In this document: positions 4,870 through 63,372 of the stretch, piece after piece
Numbering within the stretch: position 1 is the stretch's first letter
Layout: every line of letters starts with the position of its first letter
Source of the DNA: Macrostomum hystrix
Taxonomy: Eukaryota; Animalia; Platyhelminthes
Length of the DNA stretch: 64,000 nucleotides
Assembly: GCA_950097015.1 (NCBI GenBank)
Contig: CATNEN010000002.1
Coordinates: 6,448,001 to 6,512,000, forward strand
Direction: 5' to 3'
Notes under the pieces: model-generated
What the model was told of the DNA's origin: nothing
The model's input: the letters and a program-made list of their open reading frames with translations, nothing else
Databases searched by the model: none
Program-made: the position numbers and the translations under genes

Positions 4870-5565
4870 GATCCCATCTCACTATCGCCCCCTGATCTCA
4901 TCTCACTATCGTCCTCTGATCCCATCTCACTATCATCCTCTGATCCCATCTCACTATCATCCTCTGATACCATCTCACTATCACCTTCTGATCCCATCTC
5001 ACTATCATCCTCTGATCCCATCTCACTATCATCCACTGACCCCATCTCATTATCATCTTCTGATCCCATCTCACTATCATCCACTGATCCCATCTCACTA
5101 TCATCCTCTGATCCCATCTCACTATCATCCTCTGATCCCATCTCATTATCATCTTCTGATCCCATCTCACTATCATCCACTGACCCCATCTCATTATCAT
5201 CTTCTGATCCCATCTCACTATCATCCACTGATCCCATCTCACTATCATCCTCTGATCCCATCTCACTATCATCCTCTGATCCCATCTCATTATCATCTTC
5301 TGATCCCATCTCACTATCATCCATGCACTGATCCCATCTCACTATCATCTTCTGATCCCATCTCACTATCATCCTTTGATCCCATCTCACTATCATCCTC
5401 TGATCCCATCTCATGATCATCCTCTGATCCCATCTCATGATCATCCTCTGATCCCATCTCATGATCATCCTCTGATCCCATCTCATGATCATCCTCTGAT
5501 CCCATCTCATGATCATCCTCTGATCCCATCTCATGATCATCCTCTGATCCCATCTCATGATCATA
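4870..5565. repeat. 24-bp minisatellite (ATCCCATCTCACTATCATCCTCTG), block 1
   Basis: 24-bp periodicity; 8-aa periodic translations in all frames. Confidence 0.97.
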
Positions 5566-6379
5566 CTTAAATCCCACGTATCGATCAATCTCTGATTCCA
5601 TCATGTTTGAATCCCATCTCATCCCAATCGCATATATCCTGTCTCCGCTAATCCAGATTCCCACAATCTTCCAATCGCAGAGCAACTGATCCCCGAGCAG
5701 CATCCCAGTCTGCACTCAGGGATCACGCGAGGCACAAACCGGGGGGAGGGGGTGGTTGGCCGGCTGTTGTCGAAGGTGCCGCCAGCGACGTCTGCAAGCG
5801 ACACCGCGGCATAATTGCATTACGGCAGTCCCTTGGCGGCCCACAAATCATCAGTCAGCCTGACTGCTCCTCAGCAATGTCCCGGGCTGGCATGGAGGGC
5901 CTAAGACGAACTGTAAGCGCGCGGAAGAGAGACAGGACAGGCCGCAAAGTGCCCAGCTGACACACCGACACGTGGCGTGACGCGAATTTTCGAGCGTATC
6001 TGTGCTCACACAGCAGCCAAATAATTTGGGGTGTAAAGAACAGAAACAATTCTTCTCCACTTGATTCTTTGCAAAACAACAGACATTTTCCCTAGCGAAT
6101 GCAGGACAACTAGAAAGCGTTTTTTGCCCATCGAAACCTGACACTTAGGGCGAAACGCATGCACAAACCTGCAGCGCAATTTTTGTTTTCGATCCGTTGT
6201 TTTTGGCACTCTTCCAGCCTCTCTAAGTGCACCGCCTGCAGACCAGACACTGCACTGTCAGATGCATCAGCTTGGATGTGCACTTTAACTGGCAGGTCAA
6301 CACCTTCAACACAGAACTGCTCTTGAGACATCTGTGTTAGATTCTCAGCCTAGAGTCTGTTTGATCTCTCTCAAATTTC

Positions 6380-6825
6380 TCATTGTCTCACCCATTGCCA
6401 ATTTTTCTCTCCCATCTGTCATTTTCTCTCCCATCTCTGTCATTTTCTCACCCATTGCCAATTTTTCTCTCCCATCTGTCATTTTCTCTCCCATCACTAT
6501 CATTTTCTCTCCCATCTCTGTCATTTTCTCTCCTCTCTCTGTCATTTTCTCTGCATCTCTGTGATTTTCTCTCCCATCTCTGTCATTTTCTCTCCCTTCT
6601 GTCATTTTCTCTCCCTTCTGTCATTTTCTCTCCCATCTTGGTGATTTTCTCTCCCATCTTGGTGATTTTCTCTCCCATCTTGGTGATTTTCTCTCCTCTC
6701 TCTGTCATTTTCTCTCCCATCTGTCATTTTCTCTCCCATCTTGGTGATTTTCTCTCCCATCTTGGTGATTTTCTCTCCCATCTCTGTCATTTTCTCTCCC
6801 ATCTCTGTCATTTTCTCTCCTATCT
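6380..6825. repeat. ~21-bp minisatellite (TCATTTTCTCTCCCATCTCTG)
   Basis: Seen directly. Confidence 0.93.
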
Positions 6826-6892
6826 GTGTCTCGTATTTGTCGTCCATCTGCAAACAGCAATGAAGCAATCGCTGATAGTCAAAACACACATC

Positions 6893-6901
6893 TACTGCTG
6901 C

Positions 6902-6942
<41 letters not shown>
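6893..6942. repeat. (CTG)n microsatellite
   Basis: Seen directly. Confidence 0.95.
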
Positions 6943-6944
<2 letters not shown>

Positions 6945-7264
6945 TTGCACAGAGGCGGAGCTGAAATCTGACGCACAGTCCAAACGATGGTGCTGAAATG
7001 TCAGGCACCGCTGATGCCAGCGAGTTTATTTGCTTAATCGACTGTGACCAGCGGCAGCAGAGCTCGCACTTTTAATATGAACTGTTCCAACTGTTTTGTG
7101 TGCCAAGCTTTGATTCGAGTTAACTGTCTGGCTGAAAGCCTATGGGGTGAACTAGCCCAAGCAGGTCCTACTCAAAATCCACTTTCCGAATCATAGAAAA
7201 TGAAAAAATGAATGACACATCAGCTCATCGTTTACACACTTGCAACAGCACAACCAACATCCTA

Positions 7265-8620
7265 TGATCCCATCTCACTTTCATCCTTTGATCCCATCTC
7301 ACAATCATCCTTTGATCCCATCTAACAATCATCCTTTGATCCCATCTCACATTCATCCTCTGATCCAATCTCACTTTTATCCTCTGATCCCATCTCACTT
7401 TCATCCTCTGATCCCATCTCATGATCACCTTCTGATCCCATCTCACAATCATCCTCTGATCCCATCTCACTTTCATCCTCTGATCCCATCTCACTTTCAT
7501 CCTTTGATCCCATCTCACTTTCATCCTCTGATCCCATCTCACTTTCATCCTTTGATCCCATCTCACAATCATCCTTTGATCCCTTCTCACAATCATCCTC
7601 TGATCCCATCTCACTATCACCTTCTGATCCCATCTCACTTTCATCCATTGATCCCATCTCACCTTCATCCTTTGATCCCATCTCACAATCATCCTCTGAT
7701 CCCATCTCACAATCATCCTCTGATCCCATCTCACTTTCATCCTCTGATCCCATCTCACTATCATCCTCTGATCCCATCTCACTATCATCCTCTGATCCCA
7801 TCTGATTATCATCCTCAAATCCCATCTCACAATCATCCTCTGATCCAAACTCACTATCATCCTCTGATCCCATCTCACTATCATCCTCTGACCCCATCTC
7901 ACTATCATCAATTGATCCCATCTCACTATCATCCTCTGATCCCATCTCACTATCATCCTCTGATCCCATCTCACTATCATCCTCTGATCCCATCTCACTA
8001 TCATACTATGAACCCATCTCACAATCATCCTCTGATCCCATCTCACTTTCATCCTCTGATCCCATCTCACTTTCATCCTCTGATCCCATCTGATTATCAT
8101 CCTCAAATCCCATCTCACTATCATCCTCTGATCCCATCTCACTATCATCCTCTGATCCCATCTCATGATCATCCTCTGATCCCATCTCACTATCATCCTC
8201 TGATCCCATCTCATGATCATCCTCTGATCCCATCTCACTATCATCCTCTGATCCCATCTCACTATCATCCTCTGATCCCATCTCACTATCATCCTCTGAT
8301 ACCATCTCACTATCATCCTCTGATCCCATCTCACTATCATCCTCTGATCCCATCTCACTATCATCCTCTGATCTCATCTCACTATCATCCTCTGATCCCA
8401 TCTCACTATCATCCTCTGATCTCATCTCACTATCGTCCTCTGATCCCATCTCACTATCATCCTTTGATCCCATCTCACTATCATCCTCTGATCTCATCTC
8501 ACTATCGTCCTCTGATCCCATCTCACTATCATCCTTTGATCCCATCTCACTATCATCCTCTGATCTCATCTCACTATCGTCCTCTGATCCCATCTCACTA
8601 TCATCCTCTGATGCCATGAT
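7265..8620. repeat. 24-bp minisatellite, block 2 (same unit as 4870-5565)
   Basis: Same unit with ACT/ACA/TGA/CTT variants. Confidence 0.97.
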
Positions 8621-11134
8621 AACTATCATCCTGTCTATGGTCTCACTGTCCTACCCCGATCCCATTTCTCTGACCCCTGATCTAATCCCATCTAATCTCA
8701 ATCCCATATTAAATCTCCCTGATTGTCCAGATCCCTAAGTGTTAGTTCCAGAAGTCCAATGTAATGATTGCCTATAGTGAACTGTATTTGGCACTGTGGC
8801 TGGGGCGGCAAGGCGCACAGGGAATGGCAGCCATTATTTTTATATCGTCGAGTGCCTGAACTGCCGGTAGCCTCTGCCCAACGACCCACCAGTTGTGATT
8901 GTTGAACGATTCTCCGGGGAGTAGGTCATAGTTCTGCTGATTGACAAACCAAATGAGACCCGAAATATGAGGGGGAGACATTGCTGCAGTGGGAAAATGG
9001 GATATACGTGAGACAACTTCAGTGCTGTAGCTATAATGCCAATTTTAGATTCAGCTTTTCAATGAGGCTGGCAAAATAAACGATTCAAAAGAGTGCTAGT
9101 CGATAAAAGTGCACGCGAATGTCGTTCAATGTAGTCATGCATCAATATGTAATAGCCAGTGCAGTCAGGGCAGATGTACACACCTGTGTGAGATTTTGTG
9201 CTCAAGGTTGAGCAGAATGGCTGTGCTTACTGCCACGAATTTTGATTGGTCTTTGTTGCTTTTAGTGCTGTTTTCCAGAGCTGAAACATTTTATGTTTTA
9301 CTGCCAGTATTTTGTATGGCCAAACGAGAGGCCACTTTGTTCTGAGCTCTCATCCGAGGACCACTCGATCCCCCCGCCGTCTCAGATGTCTCCCAAAGGG
9401 ATATTAATCCCAAATATTCGGAGCGACTGAGGCAAGTGCTCAATCCTTCATCTGGTCCTCTTTGGTGTCAGGAAGAGAGCCCACAGAGGTATAGAGTGAC
9501 TCGAACTTATCTTCATACTCCCGCACTGAGGCAGGTTTATGTATATTTTTTCAATCAAACAGAAGCTCAGAAGTTGATAAAGTCCCTGATAACAGGCCAT
9601 CCCACTCTGTGTGTGTGCACAGTGTGAGCTCACAGAGACTGAAGTGTGTGAAGGAAATTTCGTCCAGCCTTTCAGTGCAGGGACAACAGTGGAATTCAAA
9701 GCCATCTTTGATTTGAGATTGTGCGAGCTGTAGGGGACAGGCACAGCGGAGGAGAGCCAGACTGCCTGATAAAGAGGCAGTATTTGCCAATACCTCTCCC
9801 GGCAGCAGCAACAGCTTCGGCAATTTTTTTCTGGTGTGTTTTTTTTGCCGCCGCGATAATTCGGGGCAGCGGGAAACCTCAGCCGAAAATCAAAGATCTT
9901 GCCGGAGCGATAAACTGTGCAGACAGCCATTGCAGGCAACCTTCTTAATAGCGGCGGTGATAAAGCAACTGCGACACTGAACCCCACACACACCCCACAC
10001 ACACCAGCTGTCGTTAAAATTCTCTTACTGATGAAGTTTTGAAATGTAATTAAAAATCCAGACTCTAATACACTGACTGAGGCTTTGGTAAGTCATGGTT
10101 TAGCTGCAGCTTCGGCAATTAAAAGTATTCATGTTTCCTAGTGCAAGCATCACTGAATAAATTTATAGGGCCTGGAACTCCGTGGTTTTATGTTTATGCT
10201 GAATTCACAAAGGACTTTTTAAGGATCTTATACTCGTAGGTCCCCGAGAGGTCGAAAGTTCGAAAATAATTGAACATCAGCTGGACCACCCAAGCTTTCT
10301 CGGCCCCTAAAAACTGAATGCCGCCTCGAACCCGTGACAGCATTATTATTTGCTTCGATTTTGTTGATCGGCAATGCCGAAACAGTTGGCAAATCCAGCT
10401 CTCATTGCAGCTACTGTGAGCTGACCCCAGCGGCCCTGAGAGGCTGGCAGGCTGAATCCGGGATTTCGAGGACACCACGCGCTGAGTGAGAAGCAATTGA
10501 GCAGGCGGTGAAAAATCTGCAGCAAAAATCCTAACCGAATTCGTCCCCACTTCTTCTCAACTCGCCCCCGCAGCCCCGAGGGGGACTCCGGCTAGTCCAT
10601 GGGGCGCTTTTGCCCAGATTTGAGCACACTGCTCACAAGCCTAATTTTTGGCACCAAAGCTCCGCCTGCCTGCTCTGCAGTGTGAACTCAAACAATTAGA
10701 GCTGGGAATCCAATGCAATGAGTCGCCTGGAGTGGCCCAGCCGGCTAAAAAAGGTCTTCTCGGGCAAAGCCTGTCGAGAAATCCTCCACTACCCCATGAC
10801 AACGAAAAATACCCAGCATTTTGTCTTTCCTCCCTTCTCTCTCCCGCTGGTGCTTTCGCGCAGATCCGCGGCCACCGGGACGAGAGCCGATCGAATTTTG
10901 GTCCGCACCAACTCGATTGAGATGCCTGAGCACAGGATGAACTACTCGCGTTGTGAGCTCCCAGTTGTGTTAGTTTGCTAATGCAGTGGCGATGCTCAGA
11001 GAAGGCTGGAGAACTTGATTTTCTAGTTTTCGAATTTCTCACAAATGAGAGAGGTCTTTGTCCATGAGCTGGGAGACAATGCAGTTCACCCAGCTGCGAG
11101 AAATGTCCATTATTTTACTTATGTTATCAGAAAT

Positions 11135-50733: not shown

Positions 50734-52274
50734 ACGAGCTTTTCTAAGAAAAAATACTTTAACGAAAAACTGCTTCAGAAAATTGAATGCCATCCAGCAC
50801 TCCACATGCCACTCCACTTGAATTTCTGTAGATGCTTCTTCCGAAAGCATCTTTTTCAACTCCGCAGTGAATTTTCAAAGGGATCGCATACGAGTCAATG
50901 ACTGCCAGCCGGTTTTTTAGTCAATTTAGTAATACGAGTAAATAACTGCCAGCCACAGCCCAACTGCCATGCGTCTCAGTGAATGCAATTCAAGCTTGGT
51001 TAATTCCGAATACAAAACTCAATGGAAAATTGGCAAGCATTGACTGGCAGCTGCGGGACCAAGGACCACTAGTAGATAGATAGATAGATACTCTACTTGA
51101 GTAGTCCGTGTTAAAACCTAGCCATAATTGGCCTTAATTAAAGAACGAAGCGAAACTGTGTCAGTATACTATTTGGGATTGGTTGTGAGAGCAGTCTAAG
51201 GCTTATTGCCTCTCGCACCATGGTCTCTGAGTTCTATTTAAAGCAGAAAGCAGTACTACCACTGGAGCAGTATTTAAACTAAAAAGTTTCCTCTTTGCAC
51301 CCGCCAATACTGGCCAGCGGTCAGCGGGCCAAGAAGCTTCAAGAGAACGCGCTGCGAGAGCGGCTGGAGGAGGCGAAGAGGCGTCATCTAGAAGCTGCGG
51401 CCAAACGACACCATAAGGAAGTGTCCGTGGAGCTGCTGCCGCCAGTCAGCAACCAGGATTCCGAGGTGCAGCAGCTGGATCTGATTGTTATCGATGCGAG
51501 CTGCCAGCCGACGGACCTGCTGCTGGACTTGGATTGAACTCGAGAACTTCGTGAAAGCGAAAAGTGCGAATGTGGTTGCTAAACAGAAAAATCACTGTTT
51601 ATTCTGTTTGGCACTGTACAACTCTAGAGGTTCATTCAGAGTCCAAAGGATCATAACAAGAATATAAAAAGTGCTGTAGGAGAGTTCTTGGTAATATCTA
51701 ATTAATGGCTTTAAGGAGTTTGACCTCGATTGTCCAACTCATAAGTCATTGTCTTTTGCCGTTAAATTACGCCACACGGATCGCAGATAGGATCATACCG
51801 TTTGCTAACACTAAAACATATTGCATAACAAATTTATGTTGATGTTTGTATATTCAGATATTTATATATTAATAAATTATAGTTATGTTTATGTTAACAA
51901 AACGGAAATTTTACGTTGTTTAATTTTGTATAAAAAAAACTAAAATGAAGCACAAAAACAGATGCAGAAGTAAAAGTATGCAAACGCATACACAATAACG
52001 GTTTTAAGAATCTTTAAACTTCTTGAATTAAATTCTTGGCCTCAATGCCTCACAGTTCTAAACGGCTATGGAACGTAAAAAATAGCATTAGCAGTGCAAA
52101 AAAATGTTAGAAAAAAAATTATACTATAAAATATCGCGCATGTTGATCCAGACTCAAATAAGATATGACCGTCAGCACTGGATTCTGTATATATAATGTT
52201 TCTTGTGTGCACAAGGTAGTTGCATAAGTTTGTCGTACGAGCTAACCCAAAATATTAGCGATCGTGTACAACGT

Positions 52275-52795
52275 TCAAGCGCCAAGTCCACCAGCCGCAT
52301 CTTCACCACCGGAATTAGTGGCACCACCGGAAGTACCAGCCGCATCTTCACCACCGGAATTAATGGCAGCACCGGAAGTACCAGACGAATCTTCACCACC
52401 GGAATTAGTGGCACCACCGGAGTTAGTGGCCAGTGGCCGAGTTACCAGGCGCACGCTCCAAGATCCACTCGTCGAGGTCATGCCTTTTCTTGCAATGCAC
52501 GTTGCCCATTAAACCGTTGTGTAGCACCAGTCCCGATCCTTGCGACCCCTTGCTCCTGAAGGTCACAGCATCTCCAATTTTCGGTTTGGATATGCTCATT
52601 TTCCACAGCTCATTATCCTTCTTAAACTCCCGACCGAAGTAGATCGAACCTGAACGGCTGTAGTACGCTACGTCATAATTTGGATAGTTCGGATTGTTCA
52701 ACTTGATACTGAAGTATTCGCCATGTGAGTCGCAGTGCTTTACGATGTTGAAGACAAACTCCTTGCTTTGGCCGAGGATCGCTCTCTGCCATGAT
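52275..52795 (-). pseudogene. Beta-rich protein fragment (possible beta-trefoil) with a Gly/Ser/Thr repeat tail, frameshifted, abutting the LINE tail
   Basis: Frame ...KEFVFNIVKHCDSHGEYFSI...VTFRSKG...DEWILE; removing one copy of the 7-bp duplication GGCCACT joins it to the (ATNSGGEDAAGTSG) repeats. Confidence 0.4.
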
Positions 52796-52799
52796 AGTA

Positions 52800-55700
52800 T
52801 AGTAATAATAATAATAATAATCTCACGCCCCGCGCCGACCACAAGTGGCCAAAAAAAAGGGGGGGCATCAAATCGCGCGCTTCAGGGCAAGGTCTCTGAC
52901 GTGCTTCACGCCGGCTGCCTGGCTGGGTGCTCGCGCATCATCAAAAAGACGGTCGATGTAGCGAGCCGTTCGTCCCTGTCCGCGCCTGCGAGGTCCCTGC
53001 GGAGTCCACAGCAGGACTTCCTGCAGCGGCTCTGAGCAGTAGGCTTCGGCCCGGATGACATGCCCGGCAAGCCGCAGACGTCGCTTGCTCAGCAGGGCAG
53101 AAGGCCGCGTCAGGCGCGCTCGCTGGTACAGGGAGTCGGTCGTCTCTCTGCGGCGAGCGCCGAACGCGGCACGAACCAGAGCCGCATGCGCCGCGTCGAG
53201 CTGCCCCTCGAGCGCCCCGGTCAGCGTCCAGGTCTCAGCATTGTACAGGAGGGCAGTCTCGACAACAGCCTGGAACAGCTGGGACCTGGCGCTGTCCGAC
53301 AGGGCCTCCGAGAGCAGCACCGCCCGAACAGATCGAAAGGCGGCCCAGGCGGCCTTTCCGCGCCGTCTCGCCAGGTCGTCGCTCACGTCCGGCACCAGCC
53401 CGCCGAGGTAGAGGAACTGACGGCACTTCGGAGCACCGTCCCAGGGGCATCGCCGTCTCGGAGTCGGAGTCGGATCTCGGCGGGTAGATCGTGCGGCACC
53501 GTCAGCACCTCGGTCTTTTTGGCGTTGATGACGAGGCCGACCCTCGCAGCCGCCGCAGTCAGGCCATCCAGCAGCCTTTGGGCGCCTTCGGCCGTCGTAG
53601 ACAGCAGGGCGAGGTCGTCCGCGTAGCCGAGGAGGGACAGTCTCTTCTCCGGGTGTCGCCGACTGGTGCGCCTTTGCAGTAGAAAGCCGTCCTCTGCGGT
53701 CGGCAGGCCGATCCTGCACACCCAGTCCATCAGCAAAACAAAGAGGAAGGGCGCCAGAGTGTCACCCTGCAGCACTCCGGAGGTCGTGCTGAACAGGTCC
53801 GACGGTCCGTCTGGCGTCGCTACTGCAGCGGTGGTATCCTGGTACAGCGCCATGATGGCGGAGATCAGCTGCTGCGGTACGTTGTAAGCACGGAGCACGA
53901 GAGGCAGCGCGCCGCGGGCCACCGAGTCGAAAGCCTTGAGGAAGTCAACAAAGATGACAACTAGGCTTGACTGGTGGATGCGCGCTTCCTCGATGATGCG
54001 GCGGAGGGCCAGGATCTGCGTCACTGTGCCACGACGAGGCCGGAACCCGTTCTGCTCGTACCGCAGGTACGGGTCCAGCACAGGCTGTAACCGTGCTAAC
54101 AGCACCCGGTTGAAAAGCTTCGCAGCACAGGACATAAGCGAAATCCCACGATGCTCCTCCAACCGTGTGGTGCCCGGCTTCTTCGGGATGCCGACGATGT
54201 TGGCGTGGGTCCACTCGCGGGGCGCGGCACCTCCCGCAAGGACGCCATTCATCACGCGGGCCACCTCCGTGGCAACCCTTGTGACTCTCAGCGCCTCGAC
54301 GGGGACTTCATCCGGACCGGGGGCGCGGCCTCCCGGTGCCTTGCGAGCGAACTCCACAATGTCGGTGCTGGTCACTGGACTGGTGTCGAAATCTTCCTGC
54401 CGCGGCAGCGCCACCTCGGGGGGCAGCGGCATCTCGTCCGGCAGAGTCGGCGGTGGCGCGTTGACAATGGCGGCGAAAAAGGTGCGCAGCTCGTTTCTGC
54501 GTTTCTCTGCAGTGTCGCCGGTCAGGTTCAACGCTGCCTTCCTCTTGCGACCGGTGAGGGCGTTTACGACCGGCCAAATAACTCTGTTCTGCCGTTCAGG
54601 CCTGACAGACGCAACTGCTCGGATCGCGTCATCAACAGCGGATTGCTGTCGTCTCGTGTAGGCGTCTGCCAGGGCTTTCTCGGCGTCAGATGTTGGTCGC
54701 CTGGCACGTCGCAGTTGCTCGACTGTGCGGCGGGCTTCTCGGACCTCCGAGTCGCTCGCCCAAACCGGAAGCTGCCGTGACGCGGGCTCCATTAGCGGCA
54801 GAGTCTTGGCAGCGGCAGTGGCGATAGCAGAGCTGATGGTGGTGTAGTCTGGCGCCTGCGCTGATCCCAGGGCAGTCGCAAAGGCGTACGCAAACCTGCT
54901 GCGGGTGCCTTGGTCTTGCAGGGCGAGGAAATATCTTCTTCTGGGGCGTTTTGGCGGCCTGTACAGCGGATCGGAAAGCCGCACGTCGCAGTAGAGCAGG
55001 CGGTGATCGGACTGGATAGCCAAGGGTTCCACGGTGTCGCAGTTCTTTAGCCGACTGCGTTCACGGTAGCGGACCCGCACGTGGTCGAGCTGCGCCAGGC
55101 GGGTCGTGGTGAAACGGCCTCGTGCGTTCCGCCTCCTCCGCTTGCAGCCGGCGAAGGTCGCCAGCCGGTTGGGCGGTTTGCGGAAGCGCGTATTGGCCGA
55201 CACCAGGTCGAGCCTCGCCATCAGGTCCGCTAGCGCGGCGGTGTTGGCGTTCTGGCGTGGCGACACAAACGGGCAGCGCTGGGACCGTGACGCGACGGCA
55301 TTGAGATCACCAAGCACCACCATCTCGAGCTGCTCCGACAGGAACTCGTAGAATTCCTGCGCCTCCTGCTGATGGGCAGCCGTGGGGGCGTACGCACAGA
55401 ACAGCCGCGCATTGCGGCGACGTAGCCTCACATCTACGCGCAGCAGTCGGGCTGACAAGCTGATGCAGCAGACGCTCTCGCGTAGTCGTGGCCCGACGAG
55501 CACGCCGACTCCTCCGCGGCCTCTGCTGTCCGCTGACGTGTAGTGCAGCGTCCAGCCGGCCCCCAGATCCTCACGGTGTAGTCCAGGCTCGGCAGTGACT
55601 GACACCTCCTGCAGCATGACGAGGTCCAGCCGCAGGTCGGATGCCAGCTGCGCGAGCATGCCCCTTCTCCAGGCGGACTTCAGCGTTCGGCAGTTGAAAG

Positions 55701-56013
55701 TGGCTAGCCTTAGAGCGCGATTTGTAACAGCTGGGGCCCGGTGTTGGTGGGCCTCTCGGTCCCCGGCGCCACCCGGAGGAACCGGTTGTTCGTGGGTCAG
55801 CAGATGATTGTTGGCAGCAGACCGGCGGAGGTGGCCTTTCGTTCGCCCTCGCCGATTTCGTTCCCTTCGCCTCTCAATGCGGCGTTGGGTGCTTCGCTGT
55901 CCACGCCGGCCTCCCGTCCTGCCGCACTTGGCAGCCGCAGCACCGGGGCGCGGCTCTCCGTGTTGGCCGAGGCAAGCGCTGGAGGCTCCAGCGTCACCAG
56001 GAGGCGGCGGCAT
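52800..56013 (-). mobile_element. RTE-like non-LTR retrotransposon (APE endonuclease + RT), one frameshift near 53432, (ATT)n tail
   Basis: APE motifs ATFNCRTL, MLQEV, AYAPT, GDLNA, LDHV, SDHRL; RT motifs APGPDEV, RGISL, QNGFR, FVDFLKAFDSV, GVLQGDTLAP, YADD; C-terminus continues in ORF 52868-53719. Confidence 0.93.
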
Positions 56014-56244: not shown

Positions 56245-57617
56245 ATGTTTAGGATTAATCCATTGATTGATTTATCTGCGGATTTTGTCGGCGATTATGA
56301 TCCAAATGTTCTGTCCACCGAATATTTTGAGCGACTACTCAGCTCTGAAAATGATCTGAGTGATCCCTATGTGTTGAAAAAGTTGCGTGAAGAGGAACGA
56401 CAACAGTTGGAAGCCAGAGAGGGAGCTGAGTTTGGAGAAGGAATGCAAGTTGCACCACAAGTTACGGCTTCTGGGTCTTCAACTGCAGACGGAATCGAGT
56501 ATGATATTGAAGTGATAAAGCAACTCATGGCACAACAAAGTCGGTGAATACAGTCAATAGAAATCGCTGGGCGGTGAGTGTGTTTGACCGATAGAGACGC
56601 AGCAAGGCATATGACTGCAGCCGCGACGTGCATAACTTGGGCGATTCCGAGCTAAGCAAGTGTCCGTCCGTCTTTATTCACGAAGTGCGACGCGAAGATG
56701 GAATGAAATACCCTCCAAATTCACTGGTGTCACTGATTGCCGGCCTATAGCAGACAGTCCGTACAGTTCGTCAGGTCGACTTCTTCAGAGATGAGGCATT
56801 TCGAGGTGAATCTCTAGCTTTAAGAGAAAGCTTGGATGCCGCTATGAAGATCGGTACAAAGGAAGGACTAGGACTAAACAAACAGCACGCAGAGATTGTC
56901 AGCTACGCAGATGAAGAGAAGCTGAGGGACAATGTCCTGGGCAGCGAAACACCTGAGCAGCTCTTAAGGACACTCTTCTATCTAAACAGTTTGCACTTTG
57001 CCCTTCGGGGTGGTCAGGAACATAGTCAGCTGTCCATTGACCAATTCCGCCTCGAGGACAGAAACGGCAAGATGTGCCTTGTATACAAGGAGACTGAAAC
57101 CAAGACCAATGCAGGCGGTTTGAGTGACACTCGCTACGAGCCAAAGGAGGTCATCCAGTTTCCCAACGAGACTAACCCTCCTCGCTGCCACGTTCGATTG
57201 TTTCAAAAGCTCATGTCTGTAAGGCCGAGCGGCAACAAACGGTTCTATTTGCTGCCCGCCAAGACGCCTACGCACATTTGGTTCTCCAGTCGACCGATCG
57301 GAAAAAACCAGTTAAGCAAATTTCTAGCCGACATGTGCAAAACGGCTGGTGTCCAAGGCAAGAAGACCAGCCATAGTCTGCGCGCAACCTGCGCTACTAT
57401 ACTTTATCAATCTGGTATCGAGGAACAACAGATAATGGAGCGCACTGGACATCGGAGTGTCACCGGAGTGCGAACGTACAAGCGAACGTCGGATATTCGG
57501 ATTTGTCATTCATCGGCAGTCTTGGACAACAAGAAGCTTTGTGAGGTTGCTAAGGCGTTTGGTGCCAGCAGCTTTGTCTTCAACAATTGCTCAGTACTCG
57601 TAGTTATCAACAACTAA
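56245..57617 (+). pseudogene. Crypton-A-like tyrosine recombinase (DUF3504 type), inactivated
   Basis: FALRGGQEH, HSLRAT, TGHRS, YKR motifs intact; frame extends upstream through WAVSVFDR*, EVRREDGMKYPPNSL..GL*; stops at 56592 and 56748, frameshift near 56540. Confidence 0.85.
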
Positions 57618-58461
57618 ACTAAAACTTCGCGTTATGTTGCCCCGATAGTTTCAAATTTTGTCGCGTTTGTACTTTTTTCGAATTCGTTGCGAGTGGGTGA
57701 ACTTGCGGGTTTGGCGAAAAATACGAGTACATCCCCGAAAAGCAAAGATAACAGTCCGCTGTTGTGTCTCTAGCTTTTTTATGACTCTGAAAGTCTCGTA
57801 TTCGAATGCTTGTCTTAAAATAAACTGTCGAAAATGAATATTGAGTTTTCTAAATTGAATATCGGATGTGTTGAAGTCGAAATGGAAAATGTGCAGCGCA
57901 AATGTCGAGTCTCGAAAAATGCAATAACAACATCGAGGGTCCTCTGAATCATTTTTCTATGATCAAACGATTGAAATGTGGCTCGAAATTATGTACTGCA
58001 AGACCTCCTTTAACACTAGAAAGACGGGGGTATTTCAAATGCAGAATGTTTTCTGTATATCCCAACATATTCAACCAATCGCCATGAAAATCCTCAACTC
58101 GGACTAAAATGCAGTTGGGAGCTATCGTCAAGTAGGCAGTGGGTATTTGAAATACCCCCCATCGTCTTAGCGTGGTCTTTCTACTGGCGCTCGCTAAATT
58201 TCAATTACTTAGATTTCACAATACGCTACTTACAGTAGGTCCTGATGCCCATCCTACTTATTAGTTGTTGCTTCATTACAAAGCTGAATCTTTGGTTTAG
58301 AAAATTTAGCCAACCACTTTCCCGCAAAAATGGTTGCAAAATTCCTAAAGAGAGTCTATATATATACATTGCTTCTATAAAGAGCCTTACTCAAGATTCG
58401 AGTACAGCTGCTAAAAGCCTTGTGAAAACATTACATCTAGTTTATACAAAGTACAACAAAT

Positions 58462-61400
58462 ATGCTGGGAGACCGCATTCAAGACACCAGCCAACCATGC
58501 AGCCAAGAGTTTGTGCAGGCGGTGATTACAGGAAATGCTGACGTCATCCGAAAGTGTGTCAAGGCTGGAATGAGCGTCAATGCACTCTACAATTACCAAG
58601 GTATTACGATACCCGCTCTGCACTTGGCTTGTTTCTTAGGGCAGGCTCGGTCCGCAAAGTGTTTAATCGAAGTGAACGCTGACGTGGATTTGCGCCTTGA
58701 ACTTGCGCCTGCTTCTCCACTTTACACAGCCTGCCATCAAGGTCACACTGAAATAGTTGCCATGCTCATCCATGCTCAAGCTGATGTCAATTTAAGTTGC
58801 TGTGGCAGCGGCATCTTTCCGATCTACATCGCTGCCCAGAACGGTCATGCTAATGTTGTAAAACAGCTGATCAGTGCGCAATGTGATTTGGACGCAAGCA
58901 TAGTTAGCGGAGGTTCAGCTCTCCATGTTGCGGTGCAGAATGGTCACCAAGAAGTTGTTGACCTGTTAATCAAGCTGCAAGCTGATGTCAATCTGCTGAG
59001 TAGCTCAGGGAATACTCCACTCTGCATCGCATCCCAAGAAGGTCACCATCAGGTTGTGAAATCCCTCATCTGCGGACTAGCCAACACTTCTTTAGAAGGC
59101 TCAACACTATCACCGCTGACTCTTGCGTCTCAGAATGGTCACCAAAGAGTCGTCGACCTGCTCATCGAGGCGAGAGCAGAAGTAAATTTTCGCGGAAAAA
59201 CAGGAAGGGCACCATTGCATGCTGCATCGGCCAGCGGTCATCAGCAAGTTGTGCAGTCGCTCATCAATTCAAACGCTGATGTAGATCTCCTAGCCCCACA
59301 GGGCTATTCATCTCTACACATCGCTTCTCGCAATGGCAAGGAAGAGGTCGTCAGGCTCCTCATCCGACACCAAGCCAATATCGACCTTCAAACTCCAGAA
59401 GGGCTTTCACCTCTGCACGCCGCGGTACACTCGGATCACTTTAATGCGGCAGAATGTCTGGTCAAAGCGAATGCTGACGTCAATCTTCAATGTAACATGG
59501 GGTACTCAGCCCTCTATATTGCTTCTAACAGAGGAAATTGTCAAATAGCAGAACTACTCATCAAAGCACAAGCCGACGTCAATCTAGAATCGAAAAGAGG
59601 TTACTCACCGCTGTGCGTTGCCACGCAGAAAGGCCATCATGAAGTTGTAAAATTGCTCATCAGTGCTCAAGCCGATGTGGATGTCCAGACTAATCTGGGA
59701 CATCATCCGCTTTACATCGCAGCGCATCACGGCTTCGACACACTGGTGGATTCACTCGTGAAAGCGCAGGTGAATGTCAATCTTCCGTCGATGAGCAGTT
59801 ACTCAGCGTTGCATATAGCTACGCAGCGAGGTCACTATCGAGCGGTTCGATCGCTTTTGGCAGCAAAAGCTGACGTCTTTCAGGAGACAGCCAGCGGCGA
59901 GCGAGCTGTGCAGATAGCACTGAAAAGAAGGAATGCAGACATAATAAATCTGCTTGATGAAGACAATTTCAGCAAGCAGCTCGCGTCGCAACATGAAGAA
60001 ATCCCATTTGGGATTTGGGATCAGCACAGAAATCATGATAGGATTGTAACTAAAATGTGAGCCCTGAGATAAGTTGCTTGCAATTATATCAAACCTATTA
60101 AACCAAAAAAGTAACTTAAATAAAATATGAGTTGGTAAAGTTCGAAGTAACTTTTCTAACCTACAAACAAGGGTTGTGAACTAGCGTGTCTAAATTCAAA
60201 AAAATCTTTCAAAGCTCTTTTATCCCTTCCCTGCTGATCTTCTCTTTAGAGACGTCCCTGGCGACCATGAGCTGAGCGAGCAGCTGCACAATGCACTCAC
60301 TCAATCAGGATTCGTGGAGTCTAGGGTCGCACTGCAGATTGCGGTGGCCGATGTCCTGCAGGACATTCAGAGGAACCGGCAGCACCGGCAGCTTCTCGGA
60401 GGGCTGGGGAAACAGCTTGGATACTTTGAACGGCCGAGTTGACATTGAATCGGATATCGACATGATGCAGCTTGTTCAAGGCCAGCTGCATCATCTGAAA
60501 GGGTTCTGCAACTGCGCCAATGCGGGCGTGCTGCGCGACTACAACAATGGTCACATTGTCTGCCCCGGCTTTGGTAAATAGCTACGCATGTACTTTTATG
60601 CACTATTCAAATCCGATTTTGTCAAGAATTTTGCAATAAAGTTTTTTTTCTGAAAATCTGGTTACAATCAGGAGTTAACAGTAGAATGACTAAGTAGAAT
60701 ATTTCAAATACCCACATTTTCATTTTTCTGTATCTCCCAAACTAGTGAAAATCAAGAGAACGGGCTTAACATTTCCACTCTATCCGATGAGACGACTTCC
60801 AGATTCACAAAACATCGGCATCGTTGACATATTTTAAGGATTGTTGGCAGCTTCTCGGAGGGCTGGGGAAACAGCTTGGATTCCCGTCGGGGTGTCTGGT
60901 GGCAAAAACCACCAAAACTGGCAAAATTTGACTTGAAGAGATTGCACAAAGCGATGTTGTTTATCGAAGACACGTGTCACCAGTATCTTCGATAAGAATC
61001 GGCTGAATATCTCGACGATCCTGACGTCGGACGGCTTTGAAAGTTAGTTGGTCGTAAACGGCGGAAAATGGCGTGTGACTTTCTACTGTTAATGCTTCTT
61101 ACGCTACGTTCTTACTAAACATTTTTTTATTGAACATTATGCTATTTAAGACAAAGCATTTCATGATTGCAGCATCCAGTCCCGCACTGCCGACCGCTGG
61201 CTGCGCCCAGAGACCAGCAGTAGACAGAGTGTCAGCTGATCGGTTGTGCCAGTATCCGCCTATCGCGCCTCTCCAATCAAGCCGACTCGCCAAGTCGAAC
61301 ATTCCGGAGTCCGTGCTGCAGTCACTCCAACAGGATCTCACCAGTCCTTCAACGCCGTGTCATGTGGTGCGCGCAGCTTCTCCTGGTCGAGGAGGCGAAG

Positions 61401-62638
61401 AGCTCCGCGTGAGCACCAGCTTCCTCGAGAAGCGAATGCTGAGAAGCCTCAAAACCCTGCAAGGTCAGATGTTCGTCACACTCAAGTACCTGGTCAAGAA
61501 GGTCATCAGCCACCAAGATGGGTTCGGTGAGCAGGGCCTGAAGCCATATCACATGAAGACCATCACATTCCGAATGGTGGAGAAGACACTGCCTGAGGAG
61601 TGGAAGCCACAAAATCTCGTGAGTCTGGTTAGGAGATCCCTGCAGATGCTGCTTGACAGTGTCAAGAGTAACCGTACTGACGACAATCTTCATGGCCGGA
61701 TCATGAAGCACTTCTTCCTGAGCGATGCCGCTCTGTACCTCAAGGGCGTCGGTCAGAAGGACATAAGCCAGACTATGAGCAGAATCTCAGAAATACTGAG
61801 AGTTGTCATTGAATGGCTGCCTTACTTGATTTTGGGGTACATCAGGAAACTCAAAGCAGTGAGCGACAATGGCTTATTCTACTTTCACCCTTTCCAAGTC
61901 CTGCCTGAACTGTCTCTAATGCCAGTGACACAGTCCAGCAGTTCCGAGTATCACGAGATCTACGATATCGTAGGAAGGTGCTTGTTGCATCTATCAGACG
62001 GTGCTTGTGGCATGAAACTCCAAGAGTTGCTCAACGACATTTCAAAGATTCCAGAGTGCGCATTCACAACACGAGAGGCCCTCAGAGCGCTGGCTTTGCT
62101 CAAGTTCGGCGATAGAGAAGCGGCCACGAGAGTCCTAGACGAGTACAGGGGACACGGAGTTAGCTGGGGAATATTGTGGCCGTCCGCAAGGTTGGCGTCA
62201 GAGGCCAGCATGGGAATTGTGCGCGAGCATCTGCAATTCAACGACTCAACTTGGAAGTTCTGCTTCAATTTTTCCAATCGACCAAACTTCTGCAACGTGC
62301 CAGCATCCATAGCTGGATTTTTTCCAATCGAAGTAATAGCTTGCAAAAACTTATTTTACATTAACTTTCATGCATTGTTGTGGGCCTTGCGGTTCGAGCT
62401 GCAGACAGAAAGTCCAACGACTTTGCTAGCCTGGATTGAAGGCGTCGCGAACGACACTCACCCTGATGCACAGGAACTGCTTGTTGCTGCCCTGAACTCT
62501 AGGAATGCCAGGCACGCTCGCATTATTCTAGATAGGCAGAGAGATGTACCAACGAGAGTGCTCAGCCGCTTCATCCGAATTCTGAGAGAGTACCGGAAAG
62601 ATTGGCGCCTACCGCCATCGCTCAACTCGCAATTCTGA
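58462..62638 (+). CDS. Ankyrin-repeat (~14-15) + cGAS-like/Mab-21 nucleotidyltransferase (ANK-cGLR); exons 58462-60056, 60250-60573, 61173-62638; frameshift near 60370-60385
   Basis: AT|gtgagc donor joins ttag|A in frame to DVPGDHELSEQLH; GSFSEGW...SDIDMM motif; G|gtaaat joins cag|CA in frame to AVDRVSA, CHVVRA, LRVSTSFLEKRML, PYHMKT, HFFL. Confidence 0.8.
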
Positions 62639-63372
62639 GGTCAAATTTCAACGTTAAACTTGAACCATTTGCTTTTTTTAAATGGCATGGTGTAAAAGTA
62701 CAAGATCTATTCCTCTCATGTTTAAACATTATCTACTTATGTTTAGCACAAGTTTAACAATTCTCTCAAGCGCAGAAACAACCTAAAATAAGCAGTTTAA
62801 GAGTCAGTTTATCATTTCATCAAATTAGCTTTACTCTGAGGATTAAAAAGCCTTCAGCTGCTGTCGGCTGCACACCTGGCTTAATTACAAATTACAAATT
62901 TTTATAAAGGAAACATTAACTGGCACTGCAAAAGCACAGACCATACAAAATGTTTCCTTTTGTTCTGCTTTTCTGAGTCCTAGGTACGTGCTACTAAAGC
63001 GATGACAACAATGAGAAAAAGCAAATGGAACAGCACCTTATACACATGAATGAACATTATTGTTCTATTCAACCATCTCTCTTGTTTACGGGCTGCCGTA
63101 CGCTATGTACACATCTCTTGCTGCAGGAAATCTGCTTTCGTGCAGTTAAGAGCCTCTCACTTACCTTTTTCAAGTACGCTCTACCGTTTCTAGCCCGTTT
63201 ACAGTAGTTTAATGGAGGGACGAGAAGTGGTCGTTGCGAGGAATAACAAAGCATACGACTGTATAACTAAAATTCTGTTTCAAGTCTTACAAATACCTTT
63301 TTACTCGGATTTTTAGAAACACTACTCAAAGTAGAATGGTTAAGGACTATTTCTATTTAAACGCGTCGGGGC

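Follow-up and report, generated by a model that had tools for sequence, protein, structure and literature searches.

An ankyrin-fused cGAS-like receptor gene of Macrostomum hystrix carrying a 20-nt deletion in its second exon: most likely a young pseudogene, still expressed, of a very large family

Some cGAS-like receptors (cGLRs) carry TPR or ankyrin modules, and most platyhelminths are stated to be without cGLRs (Li et al. 2023, PMC9980059). Such fusions, known from corals (e.g. Stylophora pistillata) and other invertebrates, have repeat domains that are proposed to interact with ligands or proteins (Li et al. 2023). For the flatworm Macrostomum lignano, Supplement 2 of that study lists PAA86972.1, PAA45980.1 and PAA68676.1 with Ank_2, and Supplement 3 includes five M. 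lignano proteins among 140 screened constructs. Since these supplements list M. lignano cGLRs with Ank_2, the ankyrin-cGLR architecture is already catalogued and is not a discovery. The main text of the same paper names active enzymes without mention of Macrostomum; in the literature searched, no main text mentioned Macrostomum together with a cGLR, cGAS or STING, and the family occurred only in the PMC9980059 supplements. Here we analysed a gene of this type in Macrostomum hystrix, at positions 58462 to 62638 of a 64,000-nucleotide (nt) stretch of DNA (the window; assembly GCA_950097015.1, contig CATNEN010000002.1, positions 6,448,001 to 6,512,000, forward strand). In our reading, to which we assign a probability of roughly 0.7, it is a transcribed and spliced member of a very large Macrostomum family of ankyrin-cGLRs that recently lost 20 nt from exon 2, and most likely a young, still expressed pseudogene.

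An earlier note on this DNA had joined three open reading frames (ORFs) into one gene. The ORFs lie on the + strand where that note had placed them: one of 532 aa with ankyrin repeats (58462-60060), one of 96 aa (60291-60581) and one of 502 aa (61130-62638). They do form a single three-exon gene at consensus splice sites, but no single open frame results from joining them. The features are as follows.

58462..60056, + strand: exon 1, 531 codons plus 2 nt from the start ATG, encoding about 15 ankyrin repeats (ORF, Pfam Ank/Ank_2, 33-aa register)
60057..60249, + strand: intron 1, 193 nt, GT..AG (spliced contig of run X2 with 0 mismatches; joint absent from run X1)
60250..60573, + strand: exon 2, N-terminal 'spine' helix and nucleotidyltransferase (NTase) core, the frame differing on either side of about 60386 (translations, exon 2 of paralogs)
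60383..60387, + strand: lesion, a net 20-nt deletion relative to paralogs that shifts the frame by +1 (DNA alignment, protein comparison)
60440..60442, + strand: premature TGA in the ankyrin frame, upstream of D-I-D (translation)
60574..61172, + strand: intron 2, 599 nt, GT..AG, with a high-copy repeat inside (spliced contig of run X3)
61173..62638, + strand: exon 3, third catalytic Asp, Mab-21 C-lobe and helical extension, stop at 62636-38 (Pfam, family alignment)
61472-61786, + strand: Mab-21 C-lobe (Pfam Mab-21_C)
61862-62635, + strand: C-terminal helical extension, 258 aa, conserved (family alignment, AlphaFold2 (AF2) model)

The domains named in the earlier note were recovered. Pfam Ank_2 matched with an E-value of 1.5e-120 and the 33-aa register gave about 15 repeats; Mab-21_C scored 24.7 bits in the third ORF (cut-off 24.1); and a mostly helical, conserved C-terminal extension was present in the family alignment and in the AF2 model. 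The 96-aa middle ORF had no Pfam match, the NTase core being too short and divergent for PF03281. The stop of the ankyrin ORF itself (60058-60) falls inside intron 1.

We aligned contigs from four public runs to 58300-62800. X1 is a DNA run. X2 and X3 behave as RNA or cDNA, because their contigs skip the introns and depth over intron 1 is close to 0 in both. Junction 1 (AAAAT/GTGAGC ... TTCTCTTTAG/AGAC) was seen spliced in X2 record 12, which connects 59924-60056 to 60250-60365, and junction 2 (TTTG/GTAAAT ... GATTGCAG/CATCC) in X3 record 19, which connects 60426-60572 to 61172-61357, each with 0 mismatches. Both GT..AG junctions foreseen from the letters alone (60056/60250 and 60573/61173) are therefore real splice sites. 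X1 had depth 0 at both splice joints; since neither occurs in this DNA run, the joined form is not a retrocopy. The RNA-type contigs begin at 58406 (X2) and 58428 (X3) and extend beyond 62800. Rather than being transcribed separately up to its stop at 60060, the ankyrin ORF is connected to the following exons by spliced contigs.

The spliced transcript is broken within exon 2. Across junction 1 the ankyrin frame (codons 60251+3k) continues with I-DVPGDHELSEQLHNALTQSGFVESRVALQIAVADVLQDIQRNRQH..., reads ...VADVLQDIQRNRQH and then meets the TGA at 60440-42. The GS and DID codons sit in the +1 frame (60252+3k), which has a stop of its own upstream, at 60273-75. In the DNA alignment with paralogs a net 20 nt are absent between CGGCAG and CACC-GGCAGC; compared with the paralog proteins, about seven residues (xxxxFVV) are lost before GS, including a hydrophobic beta-strand. 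Exon 2 is in a single frame (...ADVLQxILRKRLNxxxxFVVGSFSEGWGNSL...SDIDVM...NGHI..GFG) in all 20 of the 20 paralog loci retrieved for comparison. When the genome was searched with an intact exon 2, almost all of the 148 matches, about 140, were continuous over residues 3-114, whereas the window copy divided into two (60251-60391 and 60384-60572) and was among the very few of the roughly 148 that were split across two frames.

As a consequence of the deletion and the stop at 60440-42, the window copy does not hold an NTase core in one open frame. Its predicted product measures 595 aa, that is, the ankyrin array with a 63-residue tail ending before the catalytic Asp pair, and the last exon junction follows 131 nt after the premature stop. 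The earlier note had called the nucleotidyltransferase signature complete. The GS, D-I-D and third Asp codons all exist, but owing to the frameshift in exon 2 the signature is not complete in any translatable product. Thus, because of the 20-nt deletion and the frameshift, the window allele as assembled cannot make the fusion of ankyrin array and enzyme. We considered two ways around the lesion and rejected both. An acceptor AG at 60279-80 would restore the frame in phase, but the resulting sequence is non-homologous, and in the RNA contig the acceptor is 60250. Translation of the GS frame could begin at an ATG at 60291, but this NTase would have neither spine helix nor strand 1, and we judged it unlikely to fold.

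Of 99 alignment columns with a conservation of 80% or more across the family, the window copy keeps 95 (87-98 in intact paralogs). Because both long exons are open and these positions are kept, we take the lesion to be recent; judged from the sequence, it looks young. The same intactness is what one would expect if the gene were functional. In that case the 20-nt gap would be an artefact of assembly, or an allele private to the sequenced line, and normally the full receptor would be made. This view, which we consider unlikely, has further points in its favour: the gene is transcribed and correctly spliced, and the site falls within two short tandem copies of ACCGGCAGC, adjoining a 36-nt repeat that breaks short-read contigs. 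However, X1 record 2, a DNA contig covering 59556-60416, spans the deletion with 0 differences from the assembly at depth 87, which is single-copy, and without a bubble. A 20-nt deletion would also be atypical as a sequencing error, and none of the four runs had a reported indel variant.

The tandem 9-nt duplication ACCGGCAGC ACCGGCAGC lies at window 60371-60392, exactly on the deletion site. Intron 2 contains a repeat (about 60700-61050) where X1 reaches a depth of 5000-9000, versus about 87 elsewhere. In the window copy only, this repeat carries an exact duplicate of 36 nt from exon 2 (60846-60881 equals 60387-60422, the GSFSEGWGNSLD codons). It is preceded by TTGTT, which matches paralog sequence that the window exon has lost. 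This duplicate may be a trace of the event behind the 20-nt deletion.

In our reading, the deletion removed the beta-strand before GS and shifted the frame, so that the mRNA encodes the ankyrin array and 63 residues only. An ankyrin-only product is at best what the window copy yields. Could this 595-aa protein be functional, as a decoy or regulator competing for ligands or partners with the full-length paralogs? Its ankyrin ORF is undamaged and has approximately 15 regular repeats, and transcript depth over it is similar to that over neighbouring exons. Yet nothing would then keep exon 3 from decaying, and it is fully open and conserved, which a very recent lesion explains better. Furthermore, a stop 131 nt before the last junction predicts nonsense-mediated decay, and no paralog examined has such a truncated design. 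We therefore regard a functional truncated protein as very improbable and keep to a young pseudogene.

What the intact relatives encode can be described more fully. The codons of the catalytic motif GS ... [DE]h[DE] ... h[DE]h are present in the window gene: GS (60387-92), D-I-D (60453-61) and the third Asp (61223-25) align with the GS, SDID and PAvD columns of the family and with canonical Mab-21 proteins. All three elements are kept across paralogs that are only 25-55% identical. Searched against the PDB, a profile built from the family alone found cGLR1 (8GJY) at 2.4e-7 and cGAS at 6e-7. For structure prediction we used an intact M. lignano homolog, PAA88786.1 (residues 570-1168; 54% identical over exon 3; 76-row alignment). 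The AF2 model of this region had a pLDDT of 93.3 and a pTM of 0.93, and its best Foldseek matches were cGAS and Cv-cGLR1. Alignment with VIA gave Z 19-20 at a root-mean-square deviation of about 3.5 A over about 270 residues (Z of about 20 versus cGAS and 19.3 versus Cv-cGLR1), with model residues 5-340 corresponding to human cGAS 161-522. That is, the bilobal cGAS/Mab-21 fold is found at the family level through the homolog model, while in the window gene itself the C-lobe alone (Mab-21_C) was recognized. The designation as an ankyrin-fused cGAS-like receptor consequently stands for the family, with the homolog fold and the conserved GS/DxD/D, but not for the window copy, which cannot make the fusion.

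The family resembles cGAS and Cv-cGLR1 (PDB 4K9B, 6CT9, 8GJW, 8GJY) in the bilobal NTase fold of the homolog model and in GS / DxD / D. It differs in sequence (13-19% identity), in its shorter N-lobe, in having no cGAS-type zinc ribbon at the same place, and in the added ankyrin array and 250-aa C-terminal domain. The N-lobe segment from DxD to the third Asp contains an H-x5-C-x-C ... N-G-H pattern, conserved in exon 2 of all paralogs (window 60483-60560), which might bind a metal at a different place from the cGAS zinc ribbon. The 258-aa tail (61862-62635) was modelled by AF2 as a mostly helical domain (pLDDT 86), and none of 58 family members had a Pfam match there. An assignment as a TPR or solenoid domain was rejected: with a best PDB Z of 7.0 and ESM Atlas TM values of 0.39-0.49, the resemblance is generic and at background level for helical proteins. 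The nearest relatives outside Macrostomum (P0083-P0120, E 1e-6 to 1e-3) are metagenomic and Logan-assembly proteins about 700 aa long that combine Mab-21 with C-terminal TPR repeats, which hints that the helical tail may derive from a TPR fusion.

Does the family make cyclic nucleotides? It could instead have the cGAS fold without such synthesis, as Mab-21-type scaffolds like MAB21L1 or with another product, in which case 'cGLR' would describe the fold only. MAB21L1 and MB21D2 (PDB 5EOG, 7LT1) belong to the same fold superfamily, with profile E-values of 3.6e-8 and 1e-7 and, for MB21D2, a Z of 19. The N-lobe is shorter than that of cGAS, with about 55 residues from DxD to the third Asp versus about 92, and the Pfam Mab-21 NTase model does not match the family. 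In the Li et al. supplement, the M. lignano constructs of the 140-enzyme screen begin at the equivalent of exon 2 (GFSERS...GSFAEAWGNSL...), and the Note column, in which active enzymes are named, is empty for #89 PAA86972.1 and #90 PAA45980.1. However, even highly divergent paralogs conserve GS, DxD and the third Asp, unlike non-catalytic MAB21L1, which lacks the catalytic acidic triad that the Macrostomum family retains. Moreover, only truncated NTase domains with nucleic-acid ligands were screened; if activity depended on the ankyrin array or on another ligand, such constructs would be expected to be inactive. We find a family without cyclic-nucleotide synthesis rather doubtful, and hold it more likely that its intact members are enzymes.

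The family is very large. The 220-Mb genome of 42 contigs contained, besides the 148 exon 2 matches, at least 89 matches to exon 3. An upstream ankyrin array followed by exon 2 and then exon 3 was found in 19 of the 20 paralog loci and likewise in M. lignano proteins, and the window copy has this order too: ankyrin array, exon 2 (helix and GS/DID), exon 3 (third Asp, Mab-21_C, tail). The arrays of paralogs span about 0.85 kb to more than 5 kb, or roughly 9 to 55 and more repeats. Among paralog loci the arrays were less conserved (35-47% identity) than exon 3 (45-57%). Taken together, family members have an ankyrin array at the N-terminus, followed by a nucleotidyltransferase domain of the cGAS/cGLR type and by a TPR-like helical tail that is specific to the family.

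An exhaustive protein search returned 78 representatives at E <=1e-10, and all those looked up were from Macrostomum lignano; these relatives typically have 900-1400 aa with ankyrin repeats and Mab-21_C. The M. lignano ankyrin-cGLRs PAA88786.1, PAA54193.1, PAA86972.1 and PAA45980.1 share with the window gene the ankyrin array, GSxxEGWGN...SDID...PAvD, Mab-21_C and the helical tail, at 50-57% identity over exon 3. They are from another species and include no close ortholog (best about 55%), whereas the window copy has 15 repeats and the frame-breaking deletion. Three M. lignano entries (P0001, P0030 and P0066) have two predicted Mab-21 regions or are giants of 2100-3400 aa; they may be true multi-domain proteins, or annotation may have fused tandem genes. 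In contrast to the repeat-fused cGLRs of corals and other invertebrates, with few genes per genome, the Macrostomum family comprises about 90-150 copies.

Two observations concern the surroundings of the gene. Upstream, at window 56832-57617 on the + strand, a 261-aa ORF contains DUF3504 and a phage-integrase (tyrosine recombinase) domain; it probably represents either an element of the Crypton type or a relic that was domesticated. The section 52001-56000 is rich in GC (57-65%, versus 30-50% in the rest of the window).

We also searched the genome with the STING model PF15009. One exon matched (C2:9104028-9105038, - strand; 25.6 bits versus a cut-off of 27). It belongs to a 337-aa open frame with at least 12 paralogs, most of them clustered at C2:8.97-9.10 Mb and others at C7:13141615, C39:4.23-4.25 Mb, C39:19157985 and C38:7495203. 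Six of ten members matched PF15009, and these matched nothing else. The best PDB hit of a profile of the family was STING, at an E-value of about 1e-3, mainly over helix alpha1 (the GEAFAWNFATTFLRLILPNLE helix). A protein homolog search with the ORF returned nothing inside the length band of the search, a result that carries little weight, and no description of the family was found in the papers that could be searched. These matches are suggestive of an expanded, divergent family resembling the STING ligand-binding domain.

Several points weigh against the picture drawn so far. The listed RNA contigs leave 60366-60425 uncovered, and the deletion is seen in DNA only; X1, moreover, may be the assembly's own source sample and hence not independent. 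Transcript depth is alike over all exons with no obvious loss to nonsense-mediated decay, contig depth being a poor measure of this. Members of the family are not known to have enzymatic activity, the M. lignano NTase constructs not being marked active in the Li et al. supplement, and the STING-like match stays below the Pfam gathering score.

For intact members we consider one mechanism the likeliest: the variable ankyrin array would serve as a ligand-sensing or autoinhibitory module and would thereby control how the cGLR domain synthesizes a nucleotide second messenger. The divergent STING-like proteins of the same genome may be the readers of this messenger. The sensing of protein ligands by the array, as put forward in the earlier note, would fit the variable repeat number among paralogs. 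A wider picture is conceivable, though we hold it only tentatively: a lineage-specific innate immunity of Macrostomum in which about 100-150 ankyrin-cGLRs with varied arrays recognize protein or other non-nucleic-acid ligands, comparable to NLR/LRR repertoires, and signal through nucleotide messengers to expanded, divergent STING-like proteins. The window copy would then be a casualty of rapid birth-and-death turnover.

Taken alone, the locus is ordinary: a recently broken member of a family that the cGLR catalogue already contains. Platyhelminths, however, have been described as mostly without cGLRs (Li et al. 2023), yet about 90-150 ankyrin-cGLR genes are found in this 220-Mb Macrostomum genome, and the cluster of STING-like genes in the same genome was previously unremarked. 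Since Macrostomum is genetically tractable, it could become a system in which to find the ligand and the signalling target of repeat-fused cGLRs.

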